Translations under genes and position numbers: made by a program
NCBI GenBank assembly: GCA_047495785.1
Contig: JBLDXI010000042.1
Coordinates: 62,001 to 126,000, forward strand
DNA: 64,000 bases
Direction of reading: 5' to 3'
DNA from: Lepidodermella squamata
Lineage: Eukaryota; Animalia; Gastrotricha
Shown here: piece after piece, positions 29,242 through 62,513 of the stretch
Layout of the letters: every line of letters begins with the position of its first letter
Position numbering within the stretch: the first letter of the stretch is position 1
Notes under the pieces: generated by a model
Databases searched by the model: none
Told to the model about the DNA's origin: nothing
Seen by the model: only the letters and a program-made list of their open reading frames with translations

Positions 29242-30149
29242 TAATGATTTTGATAATCATTAGCTAACAACGAAGAATAAATCGGATGAATAAGTCGGTG
29301 CCTGGATGCAATTTTTTATGACTACCGTAAACTACAGTATAAAGGCCACGCGCGAATAATCGCCACACCTAAGCACGCAATCAAAGGTAAATTATAAATT
29401 AAAATTTTCAAATTGATTGTTTTCTTCTTTTTCGCTTGTCGTTTGAGTCACGAAGCGGCCGCGGCGCCATCCTGACCTTTTCTGAGGGCTAACGCAACAA
29501 TTTTGACGAATCAGACGATTTTGTAAATTGCGCTGAACTCAGAGTGGTCGAATTACCTAAAAACTGTTGAAAAATCCAAAGGTCAGAAAAATTGACTTTT
29601 TTGACCTTCTGGAGCCTTGTTAACCCTCTATGGGTCATCTCAGGTCATCTTAGTTATCTTCCTGGATCTCTAACCGTAACTCCAGGAAGACGTTCTCCGG
29701 ACTTGATTTAGCATTGAAAGGATCTTTTTAAGAGATTAAAACCGCTAAAAGTCATTTGACGAGCTTGCATGGCAAGTTAGGGTGATCACCTAGGTCACCC
29801 TTTCCTATAACGGGGAAGGAAATCTTCCGACTTCTGAGACCAATAGGGTGAAGTTATTCAATATTAGTTCATTATTAGATAAAAAAGAGCTTTTCAACAC
29901 AATATTCTATCCAACGGCATTGAATAGCTCGAAAAAATCCACCAAAACGACCGATTGAAGAATACTTGAAAATTCAGTGGAGGAATCGTGAACAATACAC
30001 TTTTAATTAAGTACAGCAGAGTAGCAACTTCCTAATGCCGGAGCATTCATTTTTTTTGTAAAGCCACATCACTAGTCATCAATGTATGCGTGCTGCTCTC
30101 ACCTCATCTCACCCAGCAGCCTTTTCCAATTGCATGTGACTCCAGCCTA

Positions 30150-30568
30150 GTGCTTACTGCATGATGTTCTACCATTTTGACTCCTAACAATGCCACTAAC
30201 AATGTACATTTTCGTTCGTTTTATCTGGAAAAAAGGACAACATAAAAAGCTTTTCGTTCATTTCGTTTCGCCAGGCTTGCCGTCCCTCGTAACGCACGAT
30301 TCCCCCACTCGTGCCGCTTCCGCCGGTTGAGCTTCCTCGCGGCCGGATGATCCGCGGCAGATCAAAGAGAGGCCGTTGGAGCTTTTAACCAGTTTACCCT
30401 TAACATTCCCATACAATTGGCATGTATCTCCTTCCTTTCCCCTTTTTCCGGCTGCCACGATCGTAACAGCGGCCTGTGTGAAAAAGAAACCTTAGGCTAC
30501 AAAATGAATGAAGTTAAGAGGCTTCTCACCAAAACGACGATCGCCAATGCCATGAGTTTAGTTGCCAT
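30150..30568 (-). pseudogene. Two-loop peptide gene interrupted in loop 2 by a short LINE 3' tail
   Basis: MATKLMALAIVVL|AAVTIVAAGKRGKEGDTCQLYGNVKGKLVKSSNGLSLICRGSSGREEAQPAEAARVGESCVTRDGKPG, then about 60 bp matching the LINE end at 10756-10800. Confidence 0.75.
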
Positions 30569-31138
30569 GAGTAGTTGTAAGGAAATATTTCGACTTTATC
30601 TTGAAGATATATAAGCTTGAATAATGAAGGTAGGGTAGATGAGCTTCTCGATGAGTATTTTACCAGTCACCCGGTGTCTACGTCAACAACCGGGCAGACT
30701 GGCTGCTTTGAATTGGCTGCTTAATTAGTGATTAATGGCGCACATCTATAGCTTGATTAAGGTTAAGGGTAGTGGCGGAGTGACTGTTTCAGCAAATTGA
30801 AGAATTTCTCAAGCAATGACATGTCAAATTGGCTGTTGTAGAAGGTAGAAGCTCTAACTGCTAAACGTGAGGCGTAGGAATGACTCAGCGAGTCTTTGCA
30901 GGCGCCGGCCAAAGCGTTCGCTGTCTGTCGATGTTGCCAACGGGTTACCCGATCAATTTTTGAAACCCATTAAGCCGTTCGCTGAGTCTGTTGCTCTTAG
31001 GCTCTCAGGCTGCTAAAAAATTTGAACGAACATCTTTTTCATCATGGACTGTAACGAACTGAGCCTCTTCAACTCTCAGAACCGCCGAGCTCTCCGTTAT
31101 TCTCTGGCGCGTGGTAGCTGTTACTGTGTATCGCCTTA

Positions 31139-31988
31139 TGTTACGTTCACAAACTGCTTCGGAGACGCGTCCGAAGTTTTAGCCTCCGAAATTTCGTAAT
31201 CGCTCTCCGAAGTTGCGTAATCGCTGACCGAAGTTTGAGATTTTCGTTCACAAACGCGCGCACTTCGGACTGCGCACCCGAAGTGAGAACAATAGGCGGC
31301 GCGCACGCACTGAACAAAGGACGCGCACAAACTTCGGTTCGGAGAGGCCCACAACTGCTCTCCGAAGCGCCTCCGAACCGAAGTTTGTGCGCGTCCGAAG
31401 TTACTACGTACGCACGCGCGCGCGGCCACTTGACCGCGCGAGGTAGGGCGACGACATAAATTAACTGTTCCTGTGGCATCTTTAATTCATATTATTGACT
31501 ATAATTGACGAAAATGACGAAAATTTCAATTATACGGAACGTGCGCAGTAAAATCCTTGTTTTCACAAAAAAAATGTCAATATAGAAATTATCGGGTGCC
31601 CTTAAAAATAGCTTATAGTGCGCGTTGAAAAAAATCAATTTAATTTTTTATGTATTCTGAAAAATGGTGAATTTCGCGTCGAAATTTAGCTTTTTGTTAT
31701 CGTCGTCGCATTTCGCATCTTATTATTTAGGAATTTTGAGAATTCAAGTGAAATTGAAAAAAAATGTGTGTCTAACCTGCGGCCCCTTCTCTAGTTTGAG
31801 CGCGCTCGCACTCATGTGCGCGCACTCGAAATCTTCGGCCCGCAAGCAATAGAAACTTCGGACGACTCATGCCGCGCGCGCGCGGAAATTGCTACTGATA
31901 ACGTCACCGAAGTTTCGCTTGAGTGTTCCGAAGTTTCAAGTTCGGCCTCCGAAGACACCCTCTCCGAAGTTAGTTTGTGGACGCACCA
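31139..31988. mobile_element. PIF/Harbinger-like MITE
   Basis: Imperfect inverted termini tgttacgttcacaaact.cttcggag and ctccgaagttagtttgtggacgcacca, TTA on both flanks, and many ccgaag subrepeats. Confidence 0.75.
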
Positions 31989-32029
31989 TTAAAGTCTTCA
32001 ACTCCTATAACTTCAAGATTGGATGCCAT

Positions 32030-32984
32030 TAGAGATGTTCCGGTTCCAAAAAACCGCCGGTTCTCACCGGGTTGAACCCGGTTTTTTCGAACCGAAACCG
32101 CCCGGTTCCATTTTTTTCCAGCTTCAAAAACCGCCGGTTAACCGCCGGTTCGCGTTTTGGCTATATATAGCTGAACCAGCAGAATTTTGTGTTTTCCACC
32201 GTAGATATTCCAAGTTTTCACTGTATGTGTTACAGCTGCATTATTCAGTTCTGTCACTATTAGCTTAGATTTAATTAATGGAGGTGACCATGTGGGCAGA
32301 AAAAGTTAAGAATATTTTTTTGAAAAATTAGATTTTTCGATCATTTTAACCGTTAATTCCTTTTCACCAATGATTGCCACAACAAAACAAACACTGCCAT
32401 TTGATTCCTCGTGAAATTTTGGTCTTGACGATGTATTACAAAAGATATTTGAGAAAAAAATAAAATTCAAAGCATCTCGGCAATAAAGTAATAAAATAAT
32501 TTATGACCCCCAATTATCTCGATAACCATGATAGCTATAAAAATTCTGAAAAAAGATTCAGAGTCCCCGACCTAAATTCACCCCGTAATTTGGGGGATTT
32601 CGACATGAAAGGAAGCGGTTTTGCCGTTCTTCTTTGAAAATATCAATACAAAGAATATTTCCGCTAGCTTAATTGAGATCGGAAGTAACACTGATTTTAC
32701 GATATCTCGAGTTCCAATTGTCCGATAATGTTAAAAACTTGTAGTCCGGGGTAGAATTTCACGCTGAAGACGCTGGGACCGTTTGTTTCTTGGTCTGAGC
32801 AACGGATTATCAAGTATCGATTATCGATTATCGGTTATTGATTATGAATGACGGAATTCCATAGTAACAGCGGAACCCGCGGTTAACCGCCGGTTAAACC
32901 GAAAAAACCGGATTACACCTCAGAAAGTTTGGAACCGAACCGAACCGAACCGGACAGATTAAAAATGGAACCGGAACATCTCTA
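32030..32984. mobile_element. hAT-type MITE
   Basis: Inverted termini TAGAGATGTTCCGGTTCCA / TGGAACCGGAACATCTCTA with an 8-bp target duplication gatgccat. Confidence 0.92.
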
Positions 32985-33577
32985 GATGCCATTAGTCCCA
33001 TTTTCTACGAGCGGGGAAAGGGTGTCAAGTGGCAACGAACTCTCTTGTCATCTACACTAGTGATATCATTTGTTCACCAAGAGCCCTTGGAACGTCCCAG
33101 GACGCTCACTAACAGAAGTTTTTCCCAAAATCACTAATTATAGCCCTTTTTGGCTATAATTTCACAAAATTATCCATCTGGGAACACAAGGTCTGCCTTG
33201 AATCATTGGTTGATGGCCGCTCCTTGTAGCAGAAATCAAACAATTGTTAAAGAGGTGGCATTTTTTATTTAGCAAATTACATCAAATTATGATTGGCGGA
33301 TGGAGTGGTCACTGATGGCTGGAATAAATTCACTATTGAAAGATTTTTGATTATTTTAACAATTTTCTTCGACAAACTTCATTTGTTACGAATCACATCA
33401 CATTTGTTGACACACACATGTAACCCCTCGTTATTTTAAACGTAGCTAGCCGTGAATCAAGCATAAGTAATAGCTTGTTAATGACAAAAAAGCCACACGC
33501 AGAGGCGAGAAAGCGGATAAAAGCATTCCAGTAAGCTATCATGCTAAACCGCTCTTTGATGTCAATTTATTCATAAA

Positions 33578-35167
33578 ATGCGGCATTTAACCACGATTCT
33601 TATACTAATTTCCGGGAGAGCTCTTACGCAAGTTCAGGCTGAATCTGTTCTAGAGCAGTCGTGCATCGTACCAAATATAACCGCAGGACTTGTAAACCGA
33701 GTGAACTCGGAAACTTTAGAAGTTTCCGCCCAAGTTTTGCGTCCTGGAACTGTTCTGAGGATAGGCGAAACAGTGAATGTGATATGCGACACCGGATATT
33801 CCTACTCCTCTCCTGTTACTATTGCGACGTGTCTCCCACCCTTCAGCCCAATGATAAATGGAACCTGTAATCGTATGTGTAAGTAAATATTCAGTTTAAA
33901 ATGAGTAGGAGCCTCGGCTAATCTTGAATTTTTCGAATTTTTAATCACGGCTATAATTGCCTCTCCAGATTGTGGACCACTCCCTTCGATACAGGGCGGA
34001 TTTGTAAGGTCAGGCCCGTCGACAAAAGGCGCCATTCGGAACATTACCTGCTACCAGAATTTCGTTGCGCGAGGAAACACAACAATAGCCTGCCTTGCTA
34101 ACTCAACGTGGTCGAACCCTGGATACTGCATTTCAAAGCAGCAACTTGTGAGCTTGACTCGGCTAGGATATTTTTTAGTTCAGGTAATGATCGCACCTTA
34201 ATCTGCACCTAAACATTATACGTTAACTGTCATAATTTAAGAACTTTAAATTCATTTACAACTTCCTAGATTCGGACGTGTGAACATTTCTTACATTCCA
34301 ATTTTCAAACAGTATGATGAGTTGTGGAATGCAACGGGTGAGGCTGATATTGCGCTGGTGCGACGACTCGTAGCGGAGATTGACGCAATCACCGGCGGCA
34401 ACTTCGACGCGAACAAACGCTATCCTATAAAATACGCAAATTATATCGAAAACGCTACGCTGCTACGCCATTTGCTGAAGTCGCCTCATGGGCAACCTGG
34501 CCAGCTACTCGAAATCGCTCGGCTGTTTCTAGATCGCGGTGCTGATGTCAACGAAGGTGCGCCACTGGTCGCCGCGGCCGGGAAAGGATATCTCGAAATT
34601 GTTCGGCTGTTGCTCGACCGCAACGCCAATGTCGATGCTTCAACTGACCAAGGTGATTACACTGCGCTGATGGTTGCAGCCGGCTCGGGACACCTCGAGG
34701 TTGTCCGGCTGTTGATAGACCGTAAAGCAAGTATCGATATTAAGGATAATGACATATTCTCCCCGCCGTTGATTCGGGCTACTGTTCATGGGCACATCGA
34801 AATTGTCCGGCTGCTGCTCGACCGAAATGCGTCGATCAACAACTGGGATATTTTTCACGAGACGGCGTTGATGAAGTCGGCTGCTGCAGGGCAAGTCGAG
34901 ATTGCTCGACTGTTGCTGAACAGAAATGCTTCAATTGAAGCCGAAACTCCCCAGGGTGAGACGGCATTGATTTTCGCAGCCTGGCGTGGTAACGTTGAGA
35001 TTGTTCGGATGTTGCTTGATAGAGGTGCGAAAGTGAACGTTGCAGATGATTATGGCCGCACGCCTCTAGTAAGGGCCGTATGCGCGAATAGAACTGACGC
35101 TGCTGCTCTGCTGCGATTGCGAGGAGCAATCGATAACGGGTTCAGTTGTGAAAACTTTAAATCGTGA
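33578..35167 (+). CDS. Secreted protein: signal peptide, 2 Sushi/CCP domains and about 6-7 ankyrin repeats
   Basis: Exon 1 from 33578 (signal peptide; C..P..G..V.VICDTGYS..TC..C). Exon 2 about 33970-34147 (CGPLPSIQGG..ITCYQNF..IACLANSTWSNPGYC). Exon 3 34313-35167 has canonical ankyrin motifs (T-ALxxAAxxGxxExVRLLLDR.A.V). Confidence 0.85.
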
Positions 35168-35929: not shown

Positions 35930-36180
35930 CTCAGCTGCGGAACATCGCACCCCGCAGCCATTTCAAATCGCATACAATTCAAGCCGTAGATTTTCTATGC
36001 TTTTTCTTCACGGCCGAAAGGGGCGAGGCACATGTCAGTATACCACTTGTACCGCTTTAACCCATTTGCCTAAAATCGGCCCTACATAGGAGAAAGATTC
36101 CCCTTCCTCTGCTACCCGCGCCGCTTCCGCCGGCTGCACTTCCTTGCAGCCGGATGATCTGACACAGATAGCTACTCTTC
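35930..36180 (-). pseudogene. Fragment of a Cys-loop peptide gene
   Basis: ICVRSSGCKEVQPAEAAR..GKWVK.. is frameshifted, lacks the signal exon, and is followed by the family 3' UTR motif. Confidence 0.65.
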
Positions 36181-36477
36181 CCCCTTGAAAATGCTGTTGT
36201 TGCAGCTCAATTTCTAGCCTATAATAGTTCCGTCCGGCCTCCAGCCCCCAAGCTTCGGTGCGCCATTGCGGGTAAAAGCGAAACAAAATCTTTGTAACCG
36301 TTCAATTGCTGCGGATTAAATAACAAACCTTCCACTTCATCGCAATTATTTTTATTGTAAAACCTCACATCACCATCTGCAAGCGTGCTGCTCTTCTCTC
36401 ATCTCACCCAGCAGCATTTTTTCAATCGCATGTGACTCCAGCCTAACGCCGACCACAAACCAATGCATGGCCAAACT

Positions 36478-36774
36478 CTACCAGGCTGGGCGATCCTCCA
36501 TCGCTTCGTACCGTGCTGCCTCCGCCGGTTGCGCCGCCTCCTCGCGGCCGGGCCAGGATAATTTGACGCACATCAGACCACCGTGACCGTTTTTCACAAG
36601 CTTACCCGGAGCACCCTTAGCAAGTGCGCAGCGATCTCCTTCCTTTCGTTCTGCGACTGCCATGAGAGTAACAGCGGCCTATGTGGAAATGAAACATCAA
36701 GCTGCAAAGGTTATACATGACGTAAAGACGCTTCTCACCAAAACGACGATCGCCAATGTAAGCTTAGTTGCCAT
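36478..36774 (-). CDS. Small secreted Cys-loop peptide (loop 1 intact, loop 2 lost)
   Basis: MATKLTLAIVVL|AAVTLMAVAERKEGDRCALAKGAPGKLVKNGHGGLMCVKLSWPGREEAQPAEAAR-type spacer then YEAMEDRPAW*. Intron runs GTGAGA..CATAG. Confidence 0.75.
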
Positions 36775-37187
36775 GAGTAGTTGAATGGTTAGAAGAAATA
36801 TTTCGACTTTATCTTTAATATAGAAACTTGAATAATGAACTGAGCAGAGTTGGGCTGCTTTATAAGCACTTTGCCAGTCATTCAGTGTCTACGTCAGCAC
36901 GCGGCTGACTTGGCGAAGATGCAGAAAGTGAATTTCACGCCATTTGGTTCTATTTCCGGCAAACTGTTATGGCGCGCAAGTCGCAATATTCACGGAGGAT
37001 TGATAAATTAGATAACTGAGCGCGCAGTGCGGCTGATTCAACAAATTGAAGTTATTGTGAAACCATCAAACAATGATGGAAAATTGACAGAAGCGTCGGT
37101 ACAGCGGTCTAAAATGCCAAGTGCATTTTTCTAAAATTTTACAGGAGGCGAAAACACATAATTATGCAATTATGTAATTACTATTTA

Positions 37188-37810
37188 TCATGGATCTTGG
37201 AATTTTCTGAATTTTCTGTTGAAAACCGAAGCGGAACTTGAAGGTCGAAAATCGCGAAGCCTATGATGCAGGTGATCTTGAAACATGCAGAGACAAGACA
37301 AGACAGTGTTCAAAATCCCGGAATCTTCGCCATGACACCAGCCCGCGGTAACACGACAATGCCATAAAGCGAAGACAGGGGCAAAGCAGACATAGAATCG
37401 AGATCGCGGCGCCCGAGACAAGCTATCCAGCAAGTTTCAGGCGTTGAAGTCAAACATCACCGAGGCTGCCCCAATGACCGTGAACAAGGAGATGCGTAAC
37501 CATAACCAGTGATCCGTTGGCAAATCGAGCGCGCAAGCCAGAGCGAGACCTTGATCGTAAGGGCCGGATCCTGGAGACGAACATCAGTAGTGATAAACTG
37601 AACGCCATTGACATTGACCAGCGAAGCGCAGGGAATCATCGTTGAAGTCGCGACACGCGGCCTGGGCGATACCTTTATCAGCATAGCGTTGGCATTGTGG
37701 ACGAATTCGAACTGAACACTGAACGAGACTTTCGCAGCAAGATTCCGCAGTAGAGAAGTGGGTGGCCGTCCGGCAAGGATTTTGGTTCGATGCATTCTGT
37801 CAGGGAAATG
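37188..37810 (-). pseudogene. Degenerate hydrophobic coding-like segment, copy A (paralogues at 41720-42770 and 57880-58360)
   Basis: Nucleotide similarity across three loci with shared peptide blocks (DSLSR.PRSRF.VC.A.VFA.W, SGILNTVL, RKFQDP*). The reading frames are broken. Confidence 0.5.
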
Positions 37811-39118
37811 TCAAGACTTGGCCAGGCACTATAAATCGAACATAGAGATCTGCCATTCATGGCCCTTATTATCACAGAGAAATAACTGAAGCGAACATGG
37901 CATTGCCTAATTGATAATCACATGATATCACAAGCTAGTTAGCTTTTATACGATGGCGGGATGCCAGCCGGCAGATCTTTACATTCCTTTAACACTTTGC
38001 TAGAAGGTATTCACGCATTGGAAAAAACCTCCTGCAAATTTCGATTCTTAGCTCCGGGCTTCGGATTTGCTCAATCTAAGCCGTCACTCGAACTTTCACA
38101 AAACAGGACAGTGGTCTATTCATATACTTGATGATTTTCCTAGAAGAGTTCAAGTTAGATTTTCACTGATTTGATACTAGGTGAGGCGGCAGGAACAACT
38201 CACGATCATGATACGTGATCCCTTGAATATTATTAATCGTGATGTTCCGTCACTTTACCCAAAATTGTCTTCAAAAATGATGTCATACTTAATTTTGGAG
38301 GTTTGCTTTGTTTTTTGCAAACGAACGGATAACATGCAGTTTATAGTAAAACTGCCCAGTGTAGAAGATGGGAATTTTAACCACCGAAAGTGGGTATAGG
38401 TAAGTGTCTCCCCCCCCCCCCCCCCCCCCCTCCTAACATCGCTGATGTGCATAAATAACCACTGTGCTCATGTGCACACAGTTGGCATGTTTCGCGCTAG
38501 GAAATCTCGAAAAACTTGGCACTTTCGAGAATTTCGTTGAATTTGTACAATTTGACTGCGCCATCATGTCGGCCGTATGAAAATAGGCTAGAAACATTTA
38601 AAATCTCATTTTTTTTAATGGCGACTTGGCCTGATCCACAAATCGATGTGTTTAGAGAAACAGACGTAGAACGCTCGACCGAGTTCTGTGCAAAAGTTCA
38701 ACGATAAATTCATGTCTCTCACAACGTTTTAGTTGCTGGAACAGCTTAAAGCTTCAAGCCTGATGTGTCAAGGAAGCGTTCTCGGATACTCAGGCATCAG
38801 TAGAGCTGACGGCAACTCTAACAAGCACCATTGACCTGAACGTTCGCAGATGACTTCAACCTAGGAAGCTCGTACAAGGCTGAGGTTGAAAAGAGCGAGA
38901 TCAGGGCGACTCGTGTACCCAAACAAAAGAATCGCGTTCCAATAATAATGCAATATTCCGATGTAGCAGGCTACATGAACGCGAGATGAAGACAATGACC
39001 AGGGGAACACTATTGGGACTATTGCTGCCCTTGGGAATCGGAATGACGACAAGTCTTAACATTCTCACCTAATAATGATTATAAAATTCTATCGAAAAGT
39101 TATCGCGGTTTATTTGAA

Positions 39119-39475
39119 TCAGTTTTTGCTATAGACTACAGTTTTCTTATCGAGTGGTTGTTCAAGAGAAGGCGCACACTCCGCATATAGGTTGCACTGT
39201 GTTGAGCCGATGGTGATATCGAAGGCGGCGCACTGTTCCGTGGCCGAGCACAGTTGAGCGCAGTTTTCAGGCTTCGAAACGGCATAGCGACGGAATTGTG
39301 GCAACTTGCAGCGGTGACTCACAAGCGAGTAACTGGCAATGACCGGCTTTGAAAGATGACCTGAGTCGAATTTCGGAGGTGCGGCCTGATTTAAACGACC
39401 CAAGGTGATTATTGTGGCTGCTATTAGGCAAATTACAATGATGACTGTGCACACGTCGTAAATTTTTGCCGGCAT
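39119..39475 (-). CDS. Single PAN/apple-domain microprotein with N-terminal hydrophobic segment, copy 1
   Basis: S-x-E-x-CAQLC-x4-CAAF-x7-CNLY PAN consensus with flanking Cys residues; 118 aa, intronless. Confidence 0.8.
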   Translation of the reverse strand: MPAKIYDVCTVIIVICLIAATIITLGRLNQAAPPKFDSGHLSKPVIASYSLVSHRCKLPQFRRYAVSKPENCAQLCSATEQCAAFDITIGSTQCNLYAECAPSLEQPLDKKTVVYSKN

Positions 39476-39997
39476 TATTATAGTAATTGAGCGATGATGG
39501 AAAAGTGTAAATAATATATCAACGAATACAAATTACTACTACGAATGCTTTGTTGTTCCGTGTTCGCAGTACTCTCTCTGTGTTATCAGCTGTATTTTGA
39601 TCTTTTTGTCATCCGAAGTGACGAAGAATATTATTACAGCGACTATTTTACTGACAAAAATATATGTTTGGCTTGAATAGAATAGAACTTCACCTCTTGA
39701 ATTGAGCAACTCGAACCTTCTTATAGGATTTGAGTGACAATCATTTCCCTCAATTTTCCTGCATTAGTGAGTGCGACGTATTATCTCCGAGCTGGGGAAT
39801 ATTTTGGGGTAATTTTGGGGTAAAGACCTCCCTGGGGTGTTTCCGTGTCTTCATCTCGGAACCTTGGAACCTTGGCATCTTAGGCCGGATTTTGCGGAGT
39901 CAAAGTCCAACTACGTGTTGCTCTGATGGTCGATATGATAGCATCAATGGGATCAATGGGGCTTGGCAGCACGCGATTCTAACAATTGATTAATATA

Positions 39998-40174: not shown

Positions 40175-40519
40175 TAGTATGAAAAAAAATCGCACCCACC
40201 AACCCGACCAGCCCCACTATCGCGACCGACCCAGCAACAAGTAGTTTGACACTGCATATCCAGACTAAGATCTTCTAACTCCCCGCCCCGCAACATCTCT
40301 TCCTGTATCCCACGCGGATTGCTCTCTGGGTACCCACGGCAATCCTCTCTAGAAAAACGAAAAATACGATTCATAACGAAATTATAATTGAAATATCGCC
40401 ATTGATGAAAGCATTGAGGCAATGCGCTCTAAAGACGTATTCAGCTAAAATGTCGACTATCCAATAGCCAAAACAAATATACTTACTTTTGTTTTGAAAA
40501 GCACACTGTCATTTTTTTC

Positions 40520-40685
40520 ATGATCTTAAATAGAAGCCTCACTGCCATTCTTTCTTCCATTACCATTATTTTACTACTCGGAATAGCTTCTCAACACAAT
40601 AATCGATCCAAAGACTGCGAACAAGTGCGGCTAAATAACAACCGATCGAGCGGAATTGAATGGCTCGAAAAAATCTACCGAAATC
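40520..40685 (+). pseudogene. Glycosyltransferase-like copy 5, 5' stub only
   Basis: MILNRSL..SGIEWLEKIYR matches the N-terminus of copy 7, then switches abruptly to unrelated sequence. Confidence 0.8.
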
Positions 40686-41653
40686 TAGCAAATTTTCCAA
40701 ATCCATTTAAGTGGTTGAAACGTCGTAATTTTTTTCTTAGTGGTGCAGTAGGGTCCATCTTATCTTGCAACGTGAAAGAAATGTTGATGCCAAGGAAGGA
40801 AACCAATCAACAAGCGGTTCGCGGACAAATTTTAACATCAAGCAACGTCAGAAATTTCTCAAATTTCATGATTTTGTTATTAATCCAGCCGCGAAAACTT
40901 GAAAATTCTCTTGAAACCTTTAGCTTCAGTTCTCAAGCAATAGAGCTGCCTAGAAATTTAACAATTTGGCAAGCAGCAAATGATTTTCTTGCCAAAGACA
41001 TATCGCTATCATGGGGTCTATGTATGGCGGCGGGACGAAACTGAGATCGGAGAACTCGAGGCAGCCAGACCCGTTGGACCGATTTCGAAACTACAACTGG
41101 ACATCTCTAAATGAGTTCCGCGACTGGAACGCTTCCATTCATTTTGGTCAACGCGCCACGCCGGGTTTCAGGTGCCACTGTCGATACTTTCAAAAGCAGT
41201 ATGTTTGCGGCCATTCGTTGGGCTTCGATGTTCAGGTTCTTAACAAGCCGAAACCCATCTGGGTCCAGTTGGAGCTTTCAAAGCTGGAAAGGCGCAACAA
41301 GCCCGGGCGTCCACCGAGAGACAAGCTAGCTTTAAAAGTTGACGTTCCAGCTGTGACACCGTTGCCTGGCTGGGATGTTGACCAGGTTTCTCGCCTCGCT
41401 ACGAGCAACACGCTGATCCTAAATTCATGTTGAGTTGAACATGTTTTCGAAACATTTTTTCCGAGTTTCATCGAATTATATGGCAATAATTATGGGGACT
41501 TAACTTATTGCCGATGGTGAATCCTAAAGAATACAAGGCCCTGCCTATTAATACGGTTCTGCCCTTTATTGTTTCAAATGACCACTGCCATCTGCCCTTT
41601 ATTCCGGTTCTGCCCTATAATTGGGTCCTGCCTAATAATTCGTAAAATACAGT
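40686..41653 (+). mobile_element. 3' fragment of a DNA transposon with a SWIM zinc finger (MULE-like)
   Basis: FRCHCRYFQKQYVCGH (CxC-x7-CxH) followed by KPGRPP..AL. Subterminal ctgccc(t)ta repeats end in aaatacagta. Confidence 0.65.
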
Positions 41654-41719
41654 ATTTTACAAGAAGCGAAAAAATGTAAGTTTTTAATTATAAAATAACT
41701 AATATTTTTCATGCACAAT

Positions 41720-42770
41720 TGAATTTTCTGTTGAAAACCGAAGCGGAACTTGAAGGTCGAAAATCGCGAAGACTACGAGGCAAGAGTTAATGGCACATGC
41801 AGAAACAAGACAAGACATAGTTCGAAATCACAGAATCGTTGCTATGACACCATCCTGGAATCTCGACAACGCCATCAAGAGAAGGCAGGGGCCAAACGGT
41901 CGTTGAATTGAGATCGTGGCGCCTGCGACAAGCTGTCCATATTTTCATTTTTGAAGTCAAACATCAGCGAGGCTGCCCCAACCGTGAACAAGGATATGCG
42001 TAGCCATAATCAGTGAGCCGTCGGCAAATCGAGCGCGCAAGCCAGTGCGAGACCTTGAGCTTAAGGGCTGGATCTAGGAGTCGAACGACAGTAGTGATGT
42101 TGGGGCCCGAGTCCGAATACTACCCGTACGCGCTCGGGCCGCTTTAAAACATCCACCGCACACGGGCCGGCCAAGGTGTCGGCCCGAGCACGGCGGAGAA
42201 CAATAGGAACCAGCGCTATTGTTAGGCACCGCACCCGGGTTGTCGGGCTCGGGCCTCTTAAATCGGACCGCCGGGCTTGGGTCGCCGGGCTCGGGTCATC
42301 TTCTAACCAATACCCAACCCGATAACTGTGCCCAAGCCCGGCGGCCCGAGTACGACGCGCGCGAGGGCCTGTGTTCCTGTGTGGTTCCCATTGCCCTCCG
42401 CCGTGCTCGGGCCGACACCTTGGCCGGCCCGTGTGCGGTGGAGCGTGATTCTTCCAAAGTGCTATTACCCGGCCGCATACGGGCCGGCCCGAACGCGTAC
42501 GGGTAGAAATCGGGCCCAACAACGATAAGCCGAACGCCATTGACCAGCTAAGCGCCAGAAAACATCGTTGAAGTTGATGCCGCAACACCACACCCCCCAG
42601 TTCAGCAGTCGAAGGTGGGAAAAACCATAAAGACCACAGGGCCTTTAAAATGGGCCTGAAAATACCCCATAGTTCGAGGATCCTACGTCTCGCACAGTGA
42701 ACGTATTCCGTAGAAGCGTGGTGGGTGGCCGGCCGGCAAGGATTTTTATTCGATTCATTCTGTCAGGAAG
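41720..42770 (-). pseudogene. Degenerate hydrophobic coding-like segment, copy B, with inserted MITEs
   Basis: Collinear with 37210-37810 on both sides of the insertions. Confidence 0.5.
42092..42526. mobile_element. GC-rich hAT-like MITE
   Basis: Termini tagtgatgttggggcccga and tcgggcccaacaacgata with internal gggccg/ccgggc repeats. Absent from the paralogue at about 37588. Confidence 0.7.
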
Positions 42771-50311: not shown

Positions 50312-50668
50312 TCAGTTCTTGATATAGATTACAGTGTTCTTATTAAGTGGTCGTGCAAGAGAAGGCTCGCACTCCTTATATAGATTGCACCTCGTTGAGC
50401 CGATGGTGATATCAAAGGCGGCGCACTGTTCCGAGGCCGAGCATAGTTGAGCGCAGTTTTCAGGCTTCGACACGACATAGCGGCGGAATTCTGGCAACTT
50501 GCAGCGGTGACTCACAGGCGAGTATCTGGCAATGATCGGCTTTGAAAGATGACCTGAGTCGAATTTCGGCGATGTGACCTGATTTAAACGATCCAAGGTG
50601 ATTATTGTTGCTGCTATGAGGCAGAATACAACAATGACTGTGCACACGCTATAAATGTTTGTCGGCAT
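50312..50668 (-). CDS. Single PAN/apple-domain microprotein, copy 2
   Basis: 118 aa, collinear with copy 1, all Cys conserved. Confidence 0.8.
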   Translation of the reverse strand: MPTNIYSVCTVIVVFCLIAATIITLDRLNQVTSPKFDSGHLSKPIIARYSPVSHRCKLPEFRRYVVSKPENCAQLCSASEQCAAFDITIGSTRCNLYKECEPSLARPLNKNTVIYIKN

Positions 50669-51327
50669 TATTATAGTAATTGAACGATGAAGAAAAGGTT
50701 GACATATTATATTAAGGAATACGGATTACTACTACGAATGCTTTGTTGTTCCGTGTTCGCAGTACTCTCTCTTTGTTATCAGCTGTATTTTGATCTTTTT
50801 GTCATCCGAAGAATATTACAGCGACGATTTCTCCGACAAAAATATGTTTGGCTTGAATAGAATAGAACTTCACCTATTGAATTGAGTAACTCGATCCTTC
50901 TTGAAGGATTTGAGAGAAAATTATTTCCCTCAAATTTCGTATTATTTTAGTGTTCTCCAGCAGTGTGCGACCTATAATCTCCGAGCTGGGGAATACTTTC
51001 GAGTAATTTTAGTAAAGGCCCCTTTGGGCTATTTTTGTGTCTTCTATCTCGGAACCTCGGAACCTTCTCCCTCCCCGCCCCCTCCCATCTCTTCCTGTAC
51101 CCAATGTACTTCACACACTGCTCTCCAGGTATCCACGGCAATCCTCTCCACAGAGGAATGAAAAATGCGATTCAATACGAAATTAGAATTGAAACATCGC
51201 CACTGATGAAAGCATTGAGGTAGCTTTAAGGCAGTGCGCTCAAAAGAAGTATTCAGCAAAAATGTGGCGTACCCAATAGCCAAACAAATATACTTCCGCT
51301 GTGAAAAGCTCACTGCCATCCTTTTAA

Positions 51328-51406
51328 TGATCTTAAATAGAAGCCTCACTGCGATTATTTCTTCATTAATTTAATTTATTTTAATACTCGGAATAGCTTT
51401 TCAACA
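51328..51406 (+). pseudogene. Glycosyltransferase-like copy 6, 5' stub
   Basis: atgatcttaaatagaagcctcactgc.. matches 40520 and has an early TAA. The downstream flank of copy 7 (about 62030-62120) reappears at about 53535-53612. Confidence 0.7.
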
Positions 51407-53482: not shown

Positions 53483-54326
53483 TAAGCTTTGTTAAGCTAT
53501 CTCTCCCTTGTCATGCTGTAATAAAGCACCGTTTTCTGAAGCCAAACATGACGGTCGAAACCGCTGGATACCTCTTAGTCATCAACTTTTTGAAAAATAA
53601 CTGAAACTGCCTGCGTAATGCATCACAACCTAATTTAAACGATGCAAAGTGCCATGCCAACCTACGAATACAAATTACAACTACGAATAAGTTGTTGTTC
53701 CTTGTTCGCAGTATCTTTCTGTGTTAGCTGTGTTACCCGCAATCAAGATGTGGCTATTCAGCACGCGAAAAGCCTAGGGACCATGGTTCTACCATTAATC
53801 ATGGGAATAGTTGACTCATAAGCCTTGTGATGATATCTGATACCAAATGCGAACAAATTTCGAAAGGCGACTTGCATAAATAAAGAGAATAAGTAGAGAG
53901 TATGAGTGAGCCTCGTGAGCCTGATGACCTGAAGAATCTAAAAATCCCAGTGGCATAGCACCCACACCTGGGAAGCAGGTGAAACGCAAATGGTCGGATC
54001 CACTGAAAAAATGAATGTGATGGGAAAATGCAGCAAACGGCCTTGTTATTATTGCTAAATACCCATTTATTGCCTCACTCACAAAAATCGTATTTTTGGC
54101 CTCGCTCAGATGAATTTTGTATGTGTTTGCCAAGAAGTGTCGAGTCTATACTGCTATTAGTCCCAAGACTGCGGTCAGCGATTAAGAAACTTCGGAAATT
54201 ACAAAACAAACCTCCAACTTTCATCGCAATAATTTTTATTGTGGAACCTCATATCACTAGTTGCAAGCGTGCTGCTCTCTCTTCATCTCACCCAGCAGCA
54301 ATTTTTCAAGCGCATGTGACTCCAGC

Positions 54327-54647
54327 CTAACGCCGACCACAAGCTCGAGGAACGCAGGGCATAAACCTATTATGCTCGATCGCTTCGTACCGCGCTGCTT
54401 CCGCCGGCTGCGCTTCCTCGCGGCCGGTTGCTCTGGCGCACATCAGGCCGCCGTGACCGTTTTTTACCAGCACACCCGGAGCGCCCCTGCCAAGTACGCA
54501 GTGGTCTCCTTCCTTTCTTTCTGCGACTGCCATGAGAGTTACAGCGGCCTATGTGGAAATGAAATATCAGGCTATTACAAAGGCTATACATGACGTGAAT
54601 CCGCTTCTCACCAAAATGAGGATCACCAATGCAAGCTTAGTTGGCAT
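54327..54647 (-). CDS. Small secreted Cys-loop peptide precursor
   Basis: MPTKLALVILIL|AAVTLMAVAERKEGDHCVLGRGAPGVLVKNGHGGLMCARATGREEAQPAEAARYEAIEHNRFMPCVPRACGRR*, with the conserved intron. Confidence 0.8.
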
Positions 54648-55009
54648 GATTAGTTGACAGTTAGAAGAAAATTTTTCGACTTTATCTTGGAGATAGAAAC
54701 TTGAATAATGAGCTGAGCAGAGCTGGGCTGCTTCTTTAGCACTTTGCTAGTCATTCGATATCTACGTCAGAGTTTGGTAAAATATTCATTTTGGCTTGAT
54801 AAATAAGATATCTGAGCGCACACTGCGGCTGATTCAACAAATGTAGAGAAATTTTTAAGCTATTAAACAATGATGGAAATAGACAGAGGTGTCGGTAACG
54901 AGGTCTTAATTGCCAAGTGCGTTTTTCTACATTTTACAGAAGGCGAAAAGAATATGATTATTAAATTTTAAAATTACTAATTTTAATATATATCTTCGCG
55001 TTATCAGCA

Positions 55010-55990
55010 CATCTCCCGGGTGGCTTCCCCATCACTGATAAGCAGCTTTTGAATCTGATAGCATTTGCGGATGACGGCACCTTAATTGTTATGAGCCACG
55101 AGGAAATTAAATCATTAATTGATGTCTTCAACAAGGCCTGCCAAGAGCTTGGTCTGAAAATTAGTGTTAGCAAAACCCAGTATATGGTTATCGGTGAGGA
55201 TAAAAATTATCAACTGGAACTAGATGGAAAATTATTGGAGAAAGTTACGTCGTTTAAACATTTAGGTAGCATCATCACATCTGACAGTAAAATGCACGAA
55301 GAAATCAAAGCTCGTCCAGCGAAAACTGGCAGCTGTTTTGGTACTTTCAACAAGTTGATGTGCAGCAGAAAACATTTTAGCCTAGCCACGAAATTGAAAG
55401 TTTTAAAATGTGTGGCAATTACGCCTGTGAAACCTGGAACCTAACTACTGCGCAGGAACAAAGGTTAAACGTTACTTTTATGCGCTGGCTTAGAACCATT
55501 ATGGGCTTTTTCCGAACAGATTATATACCTATTATATATTAGGTTGATATGTGATGTTTTAGAATTAAGTAAAATAATTGAAAAAAATCGTTTGAAATAT
55601 TTCGGCCACATTATTCGCCAAGATGAGTATGATGCTGAAAGTCTCACGAATGCTATGTACCGTATTACCCCGCTTAATACGACACCCCGTTGCGCCACTT
55701 TGACCCTCTCCACTATTATGGGGGATAGTATTTGAACATCGGAAACAATCGCGTAAGCTGCGCCCAACCATAATTGAGCGTTAAAACAAGGTGTTTCCTC
55801 GTTGGGGGTCAAGGGGATTAGTGGGTATCCCTTCAAAGTGGCGCAACGGGGTGTCGTATTAAGCGGGGTAATACGGTACTATTGGAAAGCGGTCGACCCG
55901 AGTTGGGGCTTGCCTCGTGGTAAGCCGCCAACCCGATGGACTGCCAATTATACCATATGAAAGTGGCTCAACTCATTGCCGTATTCTGAA
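55010..55990 (+). mobile_element. Decayed, 5'-truncated RTE-like LINE of the same group as 10756-12000
   Basis: LIAFADDGTLI, GLKISVSKTQYM, F-KHLGS, RLKYFGHIIR, and W..PRGKPPTRW resuming after the MITE. Confidence 0.85.
55660..55876. mobile_element. TA-flanked MITE inserted in the LINE
   Basis: Perfect ~44-bp inverted arms CCGTATTACCCCGCTTAATACGACACCCCGTTGCGCCACTTTGA. Confidence 0.9.
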
Positions 55991-56289
55991 TTGCCCGGCA
56001 TATCTTTTCAACACAATAATCGATATAATGATTGAAACAAATGGGGCTACATTTGAGTAGATCCAATGACATTGAATGACTCGGAAAAATCTTACAAAAA
56101 GTCTGATTCAACAATCCTTGACAGTTTTCTACCCAAATAATTTACTTTTTATAACTGCTGATAACAACTTCTCACTGTCGTAGCATTTACTTTTATTGTA
56201 ACCTCACACCTCACACCAATTGTTGACTTGACAATGTAAGCGGGCTGCTGCTCTCTCCTCGTATCACCCATCAGCCTTTCCGAATTGCA

Positions 56290-56650
56290 TGCATGCGACT
56301 CCAGCCTAATGCTGACTGCATGATTTTCTTCCATTTTGACTTCTAACAATGCCACGCTTGCCGTCCTTCCTAACGCGCAATTCCCCATCTCATGCCGCTT
56401 CGGCCGGTTCAGCTTCCTCGCGGCCGGATGATCCGCGGCAGATCAGAGAGAGTTAGAGCTTTTGACCAGTTTACCCTTAACATTCCCATACAATAGGCAT
56501 GTATCTCCTACCTTTTCCTTTTGTTTTGCGGCTGACACTAGAGTAACAGCGGCCTATGAGGAAAAGAGAGGAAAAGAAGCGTTAGGCTACAAAATGAATG
56601 AAGTTGAGAGGCTTCTCACCAAAACCACGATCGTCAAGTTTAGTTGCCAT
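56290..56650 (-). pseudogene. Two-loop peptide pseudogene, closest to the 30150-30568 copy
   Basis: Exon 1 is only 31 nt (frameshift). Exon 2 retains GDTCLLYGNVKGKLVKSSN and GREEAEPAEAA*. Confidence 0.75.
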
Positions 56651-57197
56651 TAGTAGCATTACAGTCCGGCTTTGCAGGATCAAAGTCCACGTTTAGCAGA
56701 TTAATGGCATTACTGCGCTTTTTTCTACTGCGTGCCCTGTGCTATATATAAGATATTTCGATTCCAAGTCCATCTGGGCGTCATAATTGATGATTAAGCT
56801 TAAGGGCTGACATCTGACCTGATGCCTTATCAATGGTGGCGGCGGCGAGACTGATGCAAGAAATTGAAAAATTTTCCTAATGAAAATATTTCAACGCGTG
56901 TTTCAGCACTCAAATTGATGATACGAACTATTTTAAATTGTTGAGTTTATCCTTGACAGAATCGAAGCCATACGTGGAAGTATTTTTCCTGGGCTGCTTG
57001 AAACTTACGCGTTACGCGTGATGTAAAAAGGTTTCAATCACTGTGGATTGTGGGCTAGCAAATTTCCACTGTCCCAGATTTCATTTTTATTGCAACACAG
57101 CATCACGACTAGTTGACAATGTAAATATACATTCACGAGCTTGCTGCTCTCTCCTCATCGCACCCAGCAGCCATTTCAAATCGCATGCGAGTCCACC

Positions 57198-57522
57198 TTA
57201 GTGACGTCTGCAGACTTTTTTGCCTTTGCGATGCCTAACAACGCCAGGCTTGCCGTTCTTCCTAGTGCACTTTTCCCCGTTTCGTGCCGTCTCCTCCGCC
57301 TGTGCCTCCTCGCGGCCGGTAGACATGGCGCAAGCCAGTTTGCCGTCAAACCTTTTTACCATCACACCCGGAGCACCACGGCGATAACAGCTCTCCTTCC
57401 TTTCTTTCTGCGGCTATCATGAGAGTAATAACGGCCTATGTGGAAATGAAACATTAGGCTAAAAAGAGTATACGTCAAGTTCTCACCAAAATGACGATCG
57501 TCAATGCAAGCTTAGTTGCCAT
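57198..57522 (-). pseudogene. Two-loop peptide gene with one frameshift near the first Cys
   Basis: MATKLALTIVIL|AVITLMIAAERKEGE, frameshift, then RGAPGVMVKRFDGKLACAMSTGREEAQAEETARNGEKCTRKNGKPGVVRHRKGKKVCRRH*. Confidence 0.75.
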
Positions 57523-57879
57523 GCGTAGTTAAACGGTTAAAATAAAATATTTCGACTTTATCTTGAAGATGGAAATTTGAATAATGATGCACTGAGCAAA
57601 GTTGGGCTGCATTTTCAACAATTTGCTTGTCATTCCGTCTCTACGTCAGCCGTGGATTGCTTATTTGTCATTTCAGTTGCTTTATGAATAAGCATCAAGA
57701 GTGTAAGTCAGAGCTGAGCGACTGATTCAACAAATTGAAGAAATTATCATAATATCAAACAAAGATGGAAAATTGGCAGAGGCGTCGGTATAACGGTGTA
57801 AAGTGCCAAGTGCATTTTAATTAATGTAATTATGAAGGAAGCGAAAAACATAATTATTCAATCGCAAAATTACTATTTT

Positions 57880-58359
57880 TCATGGATCTTGGAATTTATG
57901 AATTTTCTGTTGAGAAGTGAACTTGAAGGTCGAAAATCGCGAAGCCAATGAGGTAGGACATCCTGACACATGTAGAGACATGAGACATAAGACAGTGTTC
58001 AAAATCCCAGAAGCAACGCTATGAAACCAGCAAAGTATGTAATACGAACGCCATGGAGCGAAGACAAGGGCCAAGCAGACACAGAACCGAGATCTCGGCA
58101 ACCGAGACAAGCTATCCAGCGACTTGGAGTCAAACATCAACGAGGCTGCCCCAATCAACGCTTGACCGTGAACAAGGAGATGTGTTGCCATAAAGCGAGC
58201 CATTAGCAAATCGCACGAGCCACGTAAGGGCTCAATGTTGAAGACGAACGTCACTGGTAATAAGCTGAACGCCATTAACATTGACCAGCGGAGCGCCAGA
58301 AACCATCGTTGAAGTCGATGTCGCAACACCACAAGCGGGCCAGGGTGATACCATATCAT
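57880..58359 (-). pseudogene. Hydrophobic coding-like segment, copy C (longest open frame, 159 aa)
   Basis: Homologous to the 37188 and 41720 segments, with several hydrophobic stretches. It may be a real exon. Confidence 0.45.
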
Positions 58360-58505
58360 TGACGCATTGGAAAAACCACCTGAAAATTTCTATTCTTTGC
58401 TCAATCTAAACCGTCACTCGAACTTTCACAACACAGGATTATGGCGGTCCTAATTCATATTATACTTGATGATTTTCATCGAAGAATCCAAGTCAAATTT
58501 TTGCT

Positions 58506-59413: not shown

Positions 59414-59573
59414 TTTTTGCTGATTTTATATTTTCATATTATAACCGTCAACCTATGACATCCGGATTTCGGTTTTACAGCGTCAAAAATGATAAAATCC
59501 GGATAACTCGTCATATTTCTACTCCATAATTATTGACAAAAAATGAACGAAACATCACCGCGGTTTATTTGAA

Positions 59574-59930
59574 TCAGTTTTTGCTATAGACTATAGTTTT
59601 CTTATCAAGTGGTTGTTCGAGTGAAGGCGCGCACTCCGCATATAGGTTGCAATTTGTTGAGCCAATAGTGATATGGAACGCGGCGCACTGTTCCGTGGCC
59701 GAGCATAGTTGAGCGCAGAATTCTGGCTTTGAGACAGTGTGACGACGAAACTCTGGCGGCTTGCAGCGGTGACTCACAAGCGAGTAACTGGCATGGACCG
59801 GCTTTGAAAGATGGCCTGAGTCGAATTTCGGCGATGTGGCCTGATTTAAACGATCCAAGGTGATTATTACGGATGCTATTAGGCAAAATACAATGATGAC
59901 TGTGCACACGTCGTAAGGTTTTGTCGGCAT
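59574..59930 (-). CDS. Single PAN/apple-domain microprotein, copy 3 (an in-frame upstream ATG at 60029 is possible)
   Basis: MPTKPYDVCTVIIV.. is collinear with copies 1 and 2. Confidence 0.8.
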   Translation of the reverse strand: MPTKPYDVCTVIIVFCLIASVIITLDRLNQATSPKFDSGHLSKPVHASYSLVSHRCKPPEFRRHTVSKPEFCAQLCSATEQCAAFHITIGSTNCNLYAECAPSLEQPLDKKTIVYSKN

Positions 59931-60683
59931 TATTGTAGTAATTGAGCAATGATAAAGAGGCGTACACGTCATACACATCATCACGCAATATATCAATGAA
60001 TACGAATTACTACTACTTTGTTGTTCCATGCTCGCAGTACATTTCTGTGTTATCAGCTGTATTTTTAGTTTCTGTCATCCGAAATAATGAATAATATTAC
60101 ATCGTCTATTTCTGCTGAGGTGTTTTGGGTGGTGTTTACCTGTTTTCTAGGACCCAGCTGAAGAAACTAAAGGGTCACCCCTGTGGCTTTTCCAGCCTTC
60201 CTCTGATTGTAGTCCCGGAGCTTGTTTGAATCATTTTCTTTAACCCTCAAGTTTTCCCATTATAGCGTTCTCAGTTCTCAAGCCGTTTATTGCGAAGTAG
60301 GATCCTCGAGCCTCGAGACAGGATGATATTTTGGGGTAATTTTGGTGTTTTCGTGTCTTCTTGCTCGAAACCTTCGTGAGGGGGATGCGGTGAATCCCTT
60401 GCACCCCATTCACTTCCCGCCTACTCATATATCTTCCTGCATCCTCATGAACATTACCCACTGCTCTCCAGTACTTATCCATACAGCAATACTGTCGAGA
60501 AGAATGAAAAATACGATTCATAATAAAATTAGAATAAAAATCTCGCTATTCATGGTTTAGGTAATACTAAGGTAATACTAAGGCGATGCGCTCAAAGGAA
60601 TTATTCAACCGAAAAATGCACTAGCCCCAATAGCCAAAACAAATAAATACTCACGTTGTGAAATGCTCACAGTCACTTATTTC

Positions 60684-61798
60684 ATGATCTTAAATAGAAA
60701 CCTCAATGTAATTATTACTACTACCGCTCTTATTATCATTCTCATAGTTTCTTTTCTTCACACTAATCGAACTAAAGATTGCGAACGTGTGGGGCTAAAT
60801 GTCAATCGATCAATCAGCGGCATCGAATGGCTCGAAAGAATCTACCGAAAAAGCCCAGTCGATTCCTTGAAACTTTTCTACCCAGAAAACGTCTCGAAAA
60901 ATCTTCGCGAATCTAGTCCGAAATGCGATTTAGTCACTGGGAATCGCGTTGTAGTCACCTTTGGATCGAATGGCACCCATCTGAAGCAGGCCGAGAGGCA
61001 TTGTGCCATAGCCGTGTCTATTCAAGGCATTGCTGCTTGCGTTGTTGCAAATTCAAACATTTACGACGCCGCGTTTTACGCCAGAAATTTCGAGAGAATT
61101 CTATCGAGGCCTCGTGGTGCTGGATACTGGCTATGGAAACCTTATTTAATTATGAAATCGCTGGTCGAAATGCCTGAGAATGATGTTTTACTGTATTTGG
61201 ATGGTGATAAGTATCTTGTCAATAATTTGGAGGAATTCGCCTGCTTACAGGTATTTTTATAAAAATTGCAAAAAATTAATTCAATTCCCCCAACTTTCAG
61301 GCTCGACTCAATCAAGACATAGTTGTCTTCAACCATGAAAAGCCGTATCTCGAGCATAATTGGACAAAAAGCGACGCTTTACTGCTAATGAATGTCGAAC
61401 ACCTGCAACCGAAATTGAGCGAAACAATGCAAATTTACGGGGCCTATTTGCTGTTGAGAAAATCTTTCAAATCTATGCGCTTCGTCTCAGAATGGCTGAC
61501 TTATGCCCAGGACGAGCGAATTATCGATGATAACCCGAGTTTTATTCGGAAAAACTTGCCTGGCTTCAAGCAGAACCGTCACGATCAGTCGATTTTAAGT
61601 CTTTTGGCTAAAAAATGGAATTTAACATCGTGGCCAAATCCTGAACTGGCGGATTTTTCGAAAAATAGCTACCCACGTTTCAAAAGTGGCGAATTCGCAC
61701 CTTGTTATAATTGTTTAGATTTCGATAAATTAACTATTGAAAATGTGAAATTGCCGACTCGAAAGCTGGTGAGACAAGGCCTTATTGTGAAAAGTTGA
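60684..61798 (+). CDS. Glycosyltransferase-like protein, copy 7 (divergent subfamily)
   Basis: Exons 60684 (or 60663) to 61250 and 61301-61798 with a 50-bp intron at the conserved site. Motifs RGAGYWLWKPY, YLDGD and NRHDQSILSLL. Confidence 0.87.
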
Positions 61799-62513
61799 TA
61801 ATTTGCTCAATAAAATTTCTATAAGTTTCAAGTGTATTTTTGAAGTTAAATGAATCATCATTTCGAAAGGCTGAATACTGGTTATTTTTCGCTGTTTTCG
61901 TAAGTTAACTTTTGAAAAATGGAGGGAATTCCCAACTTTTTGACCTTTTATCCAAGGAAAATTATTAGGGTAAGTCACTGAAGTTCAATGTTTTGGCAAC
62001 CATTAATCATGCTTTATTGAAGCGCCGTTTTCCAAAGCCAAAGATGACTCATTTAAGTCGGCCGAAACCGCTAGATACCTCTTAGTCATCAACCTATTGA
62101 ATACTAACTACAACTGCCTTCAACGACAGACATAAATCATGTTTTTTTCGACCACGCGTGACTGAACACGCATGGGCGTTTGTAAAAAAAAGAGAATTAT
62201 CAAAAGCCATCATTGAGCAGAGATTATTTCTATACATAAGTTTAAGAGGAGAAAAAAGTTGAATAAAAGCACGCGCGTGGTGGCATGGTTACGACTGAAG
62301 CAACACCTACCCCCTCCATAGTAATATAACAAGGCTTTTATCATCAGCCGTATCATCACCACGTAGATATTATTATTATTATTATTCAATGACAGCGCGA
62401 GATAATCTCTTCCTCGTCATCATTAGCAACTTTTTCCACTCGAGAGCGAGAGAGATATTACACATTTTATCAGCTGATTTAAACTTGTATACTTGACTTT
62501 TGATTTTCGAACG

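Follow-up and report, generated by a model that had tools for sequence, protein, structure and literature searches.

The window analysed here is a 64,000-nucleotide stretch of the genome of the gastrotrich Lepidodermella squamata (contig JBLDXI010000042.1 of assembly GCA_047495785.1, positions 62,001 to 126,000 of the forward strand); it is intron-bearing animal DNA with a GC content of about 41%, and all coordinates below are counted from its first letter. Between positions 29900 and 62120, three segments, called cassettes A, B and C, repeat all or part of one series: a gene for a small peptide, an alignable block termed H, a gene for a short protein with a PAN/apple domain and, on the opposite strand, a gene of a glycosyltransferase (GT) family. 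A first-pass annotation had suggested that the series could work as a functional module, with a Golgi enzyme and its PAN partner adding glycans to the neighbouring peptides, or else as a locus of glycan writer, reader and effector, and had added that the same layout would result from passive segmental duplication. It is the last alternative that the evidence favours. With a probability of roughly 0.75, the layout arose by local segmental duplication followed by independent decay of the copies and is not a selected module of peptide, PAN protein and enzyme, for which the analysis gave no support.

Collinear copies and their decay

A self-comparison of the window showed that cassettes A (36.3-40.7 kb) and C (57.1-60.9 kb) are homologous on the same strand through five successive blocks in one order:

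36382-36898 in A and 57138-57650 in C: block 1, the peptide locus
37029-37650 in A and 57718-58317 in C: block 2, the H block, about 600 bp
38009-38163 in A and 58358-58501 in C: block 3, a short spacer
39093-39648 in A and 59548-60111 in C: block 4, the PAN gene with its 5′ flank
40336-40683 in A and 60483-60850 in C: block 5, the GT upstream region with the first codons

The claim of one gene order at 36.4-40.7 and 57.1-61.8 kb, and of part of it at about 50.2 kb, was borne out by these collinear blocks. Cassette B aligned to A only at 38118-38182, 39071-39873 (the PAN gene) and 40272-40596 (GT upstream region and stub), in the coordinates of A. A further piece, D (54198-54982), holds a peptide gene together with the 3′ portion of H and, since it lies after B, is not collinear with it. 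What the cassettes have kept is as follows:

36.3-40.7 kb, cassette A: peptide gene C3 of 78 aa with its peptide 2 out of frame; PAN1 intact; GT stub of residues 3-62, then unrelated DNA
50.2-51.4 kb, cassette B: no peptide gene; PAN2 intact; GT stub of 15 codons, then a stop
57.1-61.8 kb, cassette C: peptide gene C6 with a frameshift, 41 codons; PAN3 intact; an intact GT6 of 361 aa

An intact peptide gene and an intact GT gene stand together in none of the three cassettes, and the PAN gene is the only one that is intact in all three. The four-gene content proposed for the unit holds only in part: the PAN gene is present throughout, a complete GT is found only in C, where the peptide gene is frameshifted, and the hydrophobic open reading frame (ORF) placed between peptide and PAN is not a gene (see below). 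A different gene was lost in each copy, which argues for ordinary segmental duplication and against a peptide-glycosylation machine.

The divergence of the copies points in the same direction. Jukes–Cantor (JC) distances in non-coding DNA are 0.16-0.29 for the pair A-C and 0.15-0.28 for A-B, with a full range of 0.15-0.35 and an identity of 76-87%, and the silent divergence (Ks) of the PAN genes, 0.22-0.38, is near the non-coding distances of the same copies. This likeness of silent and non-coding divergence fits the copying of whole segments, the parts of each pair being of about the same age. Similarity is also ranked alike in the PAN gene and the GT upstream block, A-B and A-C being closer than B-C; the gene trees are congruent, but this does not discriminate between the explanations because passive copying predicts congruence too. 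All copies lie inside 25 kb in the same orientation, and no terminal repeats or target-site duplications were found at the cassette borders.

Gene families, the H block and their surroundings

The claim that the products carry secretory-pathway signals was confirmed insofar as every one of them has an N-terminal hydrophobic stretch, with a maximum of 2.5-3.2 over 15 residues in the Kyte–Doolittle hydrophobicity profile on which the call rests. By that profile, the stretch resembles a cleavable signal in the peptides, and in the PAN proteins (residues 8-27) and the GT proteins it has the look of a type II anchor that is not cleaved. The three PAN genes are the best preserved component:

39119-39475, minus strand: PAN1 (cassette A), 118 aa from an intact ORF in one exon; N-terminal anchor, then PAN/apple domain
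50312-50668, minus strand: PAN2 (cassette B), intact, 118 aa
59574-59930, minus strand: PAN3 (cassette C), intact, 118 aa from the conserved Met

There is not a single indel between the three, the ratio Ka/Ks is 0.33-0.48 over the whole protein and 0.17-0.44 in the domain, and purifying selection acts on PAN in each of the three cassettes. The luminal part holds six Cys that are invariant across the copies. The direct Pfam score for PAN_1 was 19.2 bits, below the gathering threshold of 21.4, and phmmer matched the C-terminal 55-60 residues to PAN repeats of multi-PAN proteins with E-values of 4.5e-9 to 1e-4, the matched stretches overlapping the Pfam PAN calls in those proteins. A word-index search with PAN came back blank, and an exhaustive HMMER search of 1.84 billion representative proteins found no close homologue, only distant multi-PAN proteins. 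The predicted PAN identity is supported by these matches at the level of family and fold.

The GT genes of the cassettes, and one further copy with a long intron, are:

60663-61798, plus strand: GT6 (cassette C), exons 60663-61250 and 61301-61798, 361 aa; the only complete GT gene within 29900-62120
40520-40683, plus strand: GT stub of cassette A; homology to GT6 covers some 55 codons at the N-terminus (the anchor) and stops at 40683
51327-51374, plus strand: GT stub of cassette B, 15 codons and then an in-frame stop
24789-25346 and 28732-29241: GT4, with an intron of 3.4 kb that includes a low-GC stretch at 26-28 kb

The GT6 intron (61251-61300, 50 nt, GT..AG) was confirmed by a contig joint in run X1, a run guessed to be RNA, which shows the spliced joint and also covers 60.8-61.8 kb; GT6 is probably expressed. 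Another contig of the run, at 61702-61823, has a run of 20 T before 61702 on the plus strand, with joints of the “opposite strands” kind nearby, and could stem either from an artefact of assembly or from a polyadenylated minus-strand transcript that ends within the 3′ part of GT6. When spliced GT6 was used as the tblastn query, cassette A was matched only by residues 3-62 (40505-40681) and cassette B only by residues 2-20 (51309-51365), where DNA homology to the GT upstream region runs from 51064 to 51406; even at low stringency (E <= 10), no further GT remnants appeared in A and B past these N-terminal stubs. Four other copies, GT1 to GT4 at 9.9-29.2 kb, form a subfamily A that is 54% identical to GT6 with Ks saturated, and none of them has a PAN neighbour. 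The reading frames of GT2, GT3 and GT4 are complete and GT1 is truncated at residue 240. GT4 carries changes in two otherwise invariant motifs (RGAGYWLWKPY to REAGYWLWQPY and HRHDQS to HRHAQS) and may be inactive or neofunctionalised.

The spliced GT products come from two exons and are 348-361 aa long, with the N-terminal anchor and several N-x-S/T sequons. All invariant motifs of the family are common to the window proteins and their relatives, among them GAGYWLWKPY, D-x-D and HRHDQSILSLL; the D-x-D site, a putative metal/nucleotide-sugar motif after the fourth strand, reads L-D-G-D in GT6, M-D-S-D in GT2 and M-D-A-D in GT3, and the relatives have L-D-x-G in the same column. Neither the proteins nor the exons of the window matched Pfam (including PF05637), NCBIfam or the PDB sequences, and a search of the PDB sequences with the family profile gave chance-level matches only. 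The nearest relatives are bacterial or metagenomic, with at most 46% identity over matches of about 95 residues and 23-34% overall; one bacterial contig carries GT2 and GT10 genes of its own beside the relative. No close eukaryotic homologue was found among 5.8 billion proteins or in the JGI metagenomes, and the protein collections do not appear to cover the host lineage. Three of the relatives (P0002, P0003 and P0004) pass the Pfam GT34 model (PF05637) marginally, at 24-27 bits against a cut-off of 23, and the AlphaFold (AF2) model of the bacterial relative P0004 (pLDDT 78.8) gave XXT1, BoGT6a, LgtC and LARGE1 as its top Foldseek matches, with probability 1.00. Through a full-length alignment, the window GT would have a GT-A (Rossmann-like) fold. 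The marginal GT34 scores and the fold of P0004 make “glycosyltransferase” a reasonable family-level label for what are predicted to be type II-anchored, retaining GT-A-like proteins, and both names used in the first pass, PAN and glycosyltransferase, hold at that level. The bacterial nearest relatives, together with the introns and the anchor, mark these as candidate horizontally acquired and then expanded genes, and such an origin of the animal GT genes is possible.

The H block is what the first-pass annotation had called a hydrophobic ORF, and no strand is assigned to its copies:

37029-37650: copy in cassette A; non-coding or repeat DNA that can be aligned
41654-42098: third copy (H3), outside the cassettes, found by self-comparison
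54781-54982: partial H block of piece D, found by self-comparison
57718-58317: H block of cassette C, found by self-comparison

As a protein gene, H was rejected on three counts. Mismatches by codon position number 23/37/29 and 39/44/30, i.e., there is no third-position bias; the gaps are of 19, 11, 2, 8, 4 and 1 nt and not multiples of three; and the 159-codon ORF of the copy in C is split over different frames in A and H3. No match to Rfam was obtained for the block, and no contigs of the probable RNA run lie on the copy in C. In the DNA run, the word depth over that copy is raised about five-fold, a hint of repetition elsewhere.

The peptide family is spread over a larger part of the window:

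7512-7791, minus strand: member of the peptide family, near a GT copy
18662-18988, plus strand: C0, full form
30258-30568, minus strand: C2, exons 30530-30568 and 30258-30473; peptide 1 and linker intact, an insertion shortens peptide 2
36035-36286, minus strand: peptide-like fragment with a degenerate linker copy, just downstream of C3
36478-36774, minus strand: C3 (cassette A), 78 aa; keeps the signal, the first Cys-loop peptide and the G-R-acidic-R linker, with peptide 2 out of frame relative to C4
54327-54647, minus strand: C4 (piece D), 85 aa; the two-peptide precursor is intact
56100-56650, minus strand: pseudogene C5; exon 1 lacks 8 nt, another 4 nt are deleted, and TGA stands in place of the linker's final Arg codon
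57346-57522, minus strand: C6 (cassette C); 5-nt deletion early in exon 2, 41-codon product without the conserved linker in frame
36380-36449, 54264-54333, 57136-57204, 30085-30153 and 56237-56312: copies of the 3′UTR block

Alignment of five copies and modelled splicing gave a two-exon gene. Exon 1 holds 11-13 signal-peptide codons up to a conserved G|GTGAG donor, followed by an intron of 51-66 nt, and exon 2 holds the rest of the signal, a first Cys-loop peptide, a linker (G-R-EEAQPAEAAR or R-ESQPEAAAR; the conserved type is G-R-acidic-R) and a second Cys-loop peptide. The full two-peptide form is kept in C0 and C4, and C2 and C3 have peptide 1 only. Upstream of the ATG lie the motif TGACGTAG, at about 100 nt, and a TATA-like box, at about 45 nt. 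The signal exon, intron, linker and 3′ untranslated region (3′UTR) block are 78-87% identical between copies, as compared to 57-65% for the mature peptides, a contrast typical of secreted effector peptides that evolve fast. The 3′UTR block, about 70 nt just past the ancestral stop codon, is 84% conserved, above the coding region; it contains a small GCUGCU...AGCAGC hairpin whose pairs never vary, and the lack of covariation leaves no evidence for a structured RNA. A search of the ESM Atlas with the peptide gave no usable match. No N-x-S/T sequon was found in the peptides, and the Ser plus Thr content of the four that were tallied is only 4-5% in C0, C3 and C4 and 13% in C2.

Apart from these families, the window contains ankyrin-repeat genes, reverse-transcriptase fragments and a helix-turn-helix fragment of a DNA transposon, and no Rfam family was matched in it. 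Transposon fragments and inverted repeats are located between the cassette units, and the word depth between genes in the DNA run is at repeat level, contig word depths being hints only. Two of the fragments are:

55049-55444: reverse-transcriptase fragment, about 70 bp past the partial H block of piece D
45690-46286: DUF4817 helix-turn-helix ORF, flanked by 119-bp inverted repeats

The inverted repeats (45678-45796 and 46363-46481) are 96% identical over their 119 bp, and the whole element at 45678-46481, which is probably a DNA-transposon remnant, adjoins a 653-aa ankyrin gene (43636-45597, minus strand). Directly 3′ of the GT stub of cassette A, an ORF at 41011-41433 (plus strand) has a SWIM-like CxC...CxH motif and a stretch, RNKPGRPP, reminiscent of Mutator-type transposases; no match to it was found in Pfam. 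Two more small ORFs with N-terminal signal-like segments lie at 33578-33886 and 62493-62675 (both plus strand), one with a weak Sushi/CCP match (E 0.004) and the other with a cleavage-like site, S-R-A-K-R, and the region in general is predicted to be rich in small secreted products.

Linkage and competing explanations

Peptide genes had also been reported beside the GT copies outside the cassettes. They are indeed present at 7512-7791, 18662-18988 and 30258-30568, but adjacency is not in excess: in a permutation test, 3 of the 7 peptide loci lay within 2.5 kb of a GT gene against 3.67 expected (P = 0.84), and 6 of the 7 within 4 kb (P = 0.23). Nor do the pairs share one orientation: the pair at 7.8/9.9 kb is divergent, that at 18.7/20.8 kb tandem and that at 29.2/30.3 kb convergent. 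The spacing differs as well, and no peptide gene is found near GT2. At 83 loci of GT relatives (630 kb), no PAN or peptide relative was detected at E <= 0.05, which is a weak test as the loci are distant and microbial. Literature searches for clusters of PAN and glycosyltransferase genes turned up only irrelevant papers on plant UGTs.

In the favoured explanation, an ancestral block of about 4-5 kb would have carried a peptide gene on the minus strand, the non-coding spacer H, a PAN gene on the minus strand and, head-to-head with it, a GT gene on the plus strand. Local copying of this block, for which unequal crossing-over among the many repeats would be the simplest route, would have been followed by independent decay of the copies in a birth-and-death pattern, amid the transposon fragments of the region. 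The shared gene order would be a historical by-product of the copying of one segment rather than a product of selection, and the three families would act independently, as secreted Cys-loop peptides, a membrane-anchored PAN protein and a Golgi-type retaining GT-A enzyme. Several points weigh against this explanation. Three families with secretory-pathway targeting are found together within 64 kb; the head-to-head PAN-GT pair was copied three times with its intergenic DNA, so a shared promoter is possible in PAN3/GT6; the distance of the microbial GT-relative loci makes the linkage test weak for the animal lineage in particular; and a single intact GT might serve the peptides of every copy in trans.

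The second of these points leads to the possibility that the divergent PAN-GT pair alone is the functional unit: the two genes would share a bidirectional promoter, the PAN protein would assist the enzyme as a membrane-anchored adaptor or lectin-like partner, and the peptides and H would be bystanders. The pair was copied with 0.7-1.0 kb of intergenic DNA that is partly conserved, both proteins look like type II membrane proteins, and PAN is constrained; however, the intergenic conservation is at the neutral level (JC 0.20-0.35), the GT genes of subfamily A have no PAN neighbours, and no PAN relative lies near any GT relative. What weakens the idea further is that PAN was kept intact and constrained in two cassettes in which the GT was destroyed, i.e., PAN does not need a GT in cis. 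We regard it as unlikely.

Spread of the cassette by a mobile element, through gene capture or transduction instead of unequal crossing-over, is a yet more doubtful route. The transposon fragments and inverted repeats between the units, the H copy outside the cassettes with the raised word depth of H in the DNA run, and the SWIM-like ORF directly after the GT stub of cassette A would all suit it, but that ORF has no Pfam match, the cassettes have no bounding terminal repeats or target-site duplications, and the confinement of the copies to 25 kb in one orientation is what local tandem duplication predicts.

That the genes were kept together for a GT which, helped by PAN, glycosylates the neighbouring peptides in a manner akin to glycocins or to ribosomally synthesized and post-translationally modified peptides (RiPPs) is, in spite of the N-terminal targeting segments, the repeated order and a spliced and probably expressed GT6, highly improbable: no cassette has all parts intact, the GT being lost in two of three and the peptide gene frameshifted in the third, which is the very one with the intact GT; one claimed component, H, is not a gene; the peptides have no sequon and, in C0, C3 and C4, little Ser and Thr; the adjacency of peptide and GT is at chance level, no linkage appears at the 83 loci, and four GT copies of subfamily A do without a PAN partner. 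Just as little credence is given to the variant in which the ancestral unit was a true secretory module, with the mini-PAN presenting Cys-loop peptides to the GT-A enzyme and the surviving GT6 now serving all copies in trans; if true, it would be an animal counterpart of glycocin/RiPP biosynthesis.

Comparison with known systems

The window resembles bacterial glycocin and RiPP clusters in that only a few kb separate a small peptide gene from a glycosyltransferase gene. The co-conservation of precursor and enzyme that defines those clusters failed here, however, and the genes differ from them in being eukaryotic, with separate promoters and no evidence of a leader and core. The result sets aside the attractive but unsupported idea of an animal RiPP cluster in favour of ordinary local duplication and decay. 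Of modest value in their own right are an uncharacterised animal family of predicted type II-anchored GT-A enzymes with bacterial nearest relatives, an orphan single-domain PAN membrane protein kept under selection, and a fast-evolving family of two-peptide precursors with a conserved G-R-acidic-R linker.

The fold of the P0004 model matches those of retaining GT-A enzymes of the GT34, GT6 and GT8 type (XXT1, 6bsu; BoGT6a, 4ayj; LgtC, 1g9r; LARGE1, 7zvj), and the window GT proteins have the D-x-D at the expected place and, like Golgi enzymes, an N-terminal anchor; they differ from those enzymes in the missing matches to Pfam, NCBIfam and PDB sequences and in having nearest relatives that are not animal. 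The window PAN proteins resemble PAN/apple proteins (PF00024, PF14295) in their C-terminal 55-60 residues, with the cysteines conserved in all three copies, and, unlike multi-PAN proteins, consist of a single minimal domain behind a membrane anchor.

Birth-and-death evolution with tandem or segmental duplication is known from families of secreted effectors, such as the defensin, conotoxin and frog skin peptide loci. The present locus is unlike these in that one duplicated unit carries three unrelated gene families, and like them in its local copies that include non-coding DNA, in its mixture of intact genes and pseudogenes, and in mature peptides that are the least conserved part.

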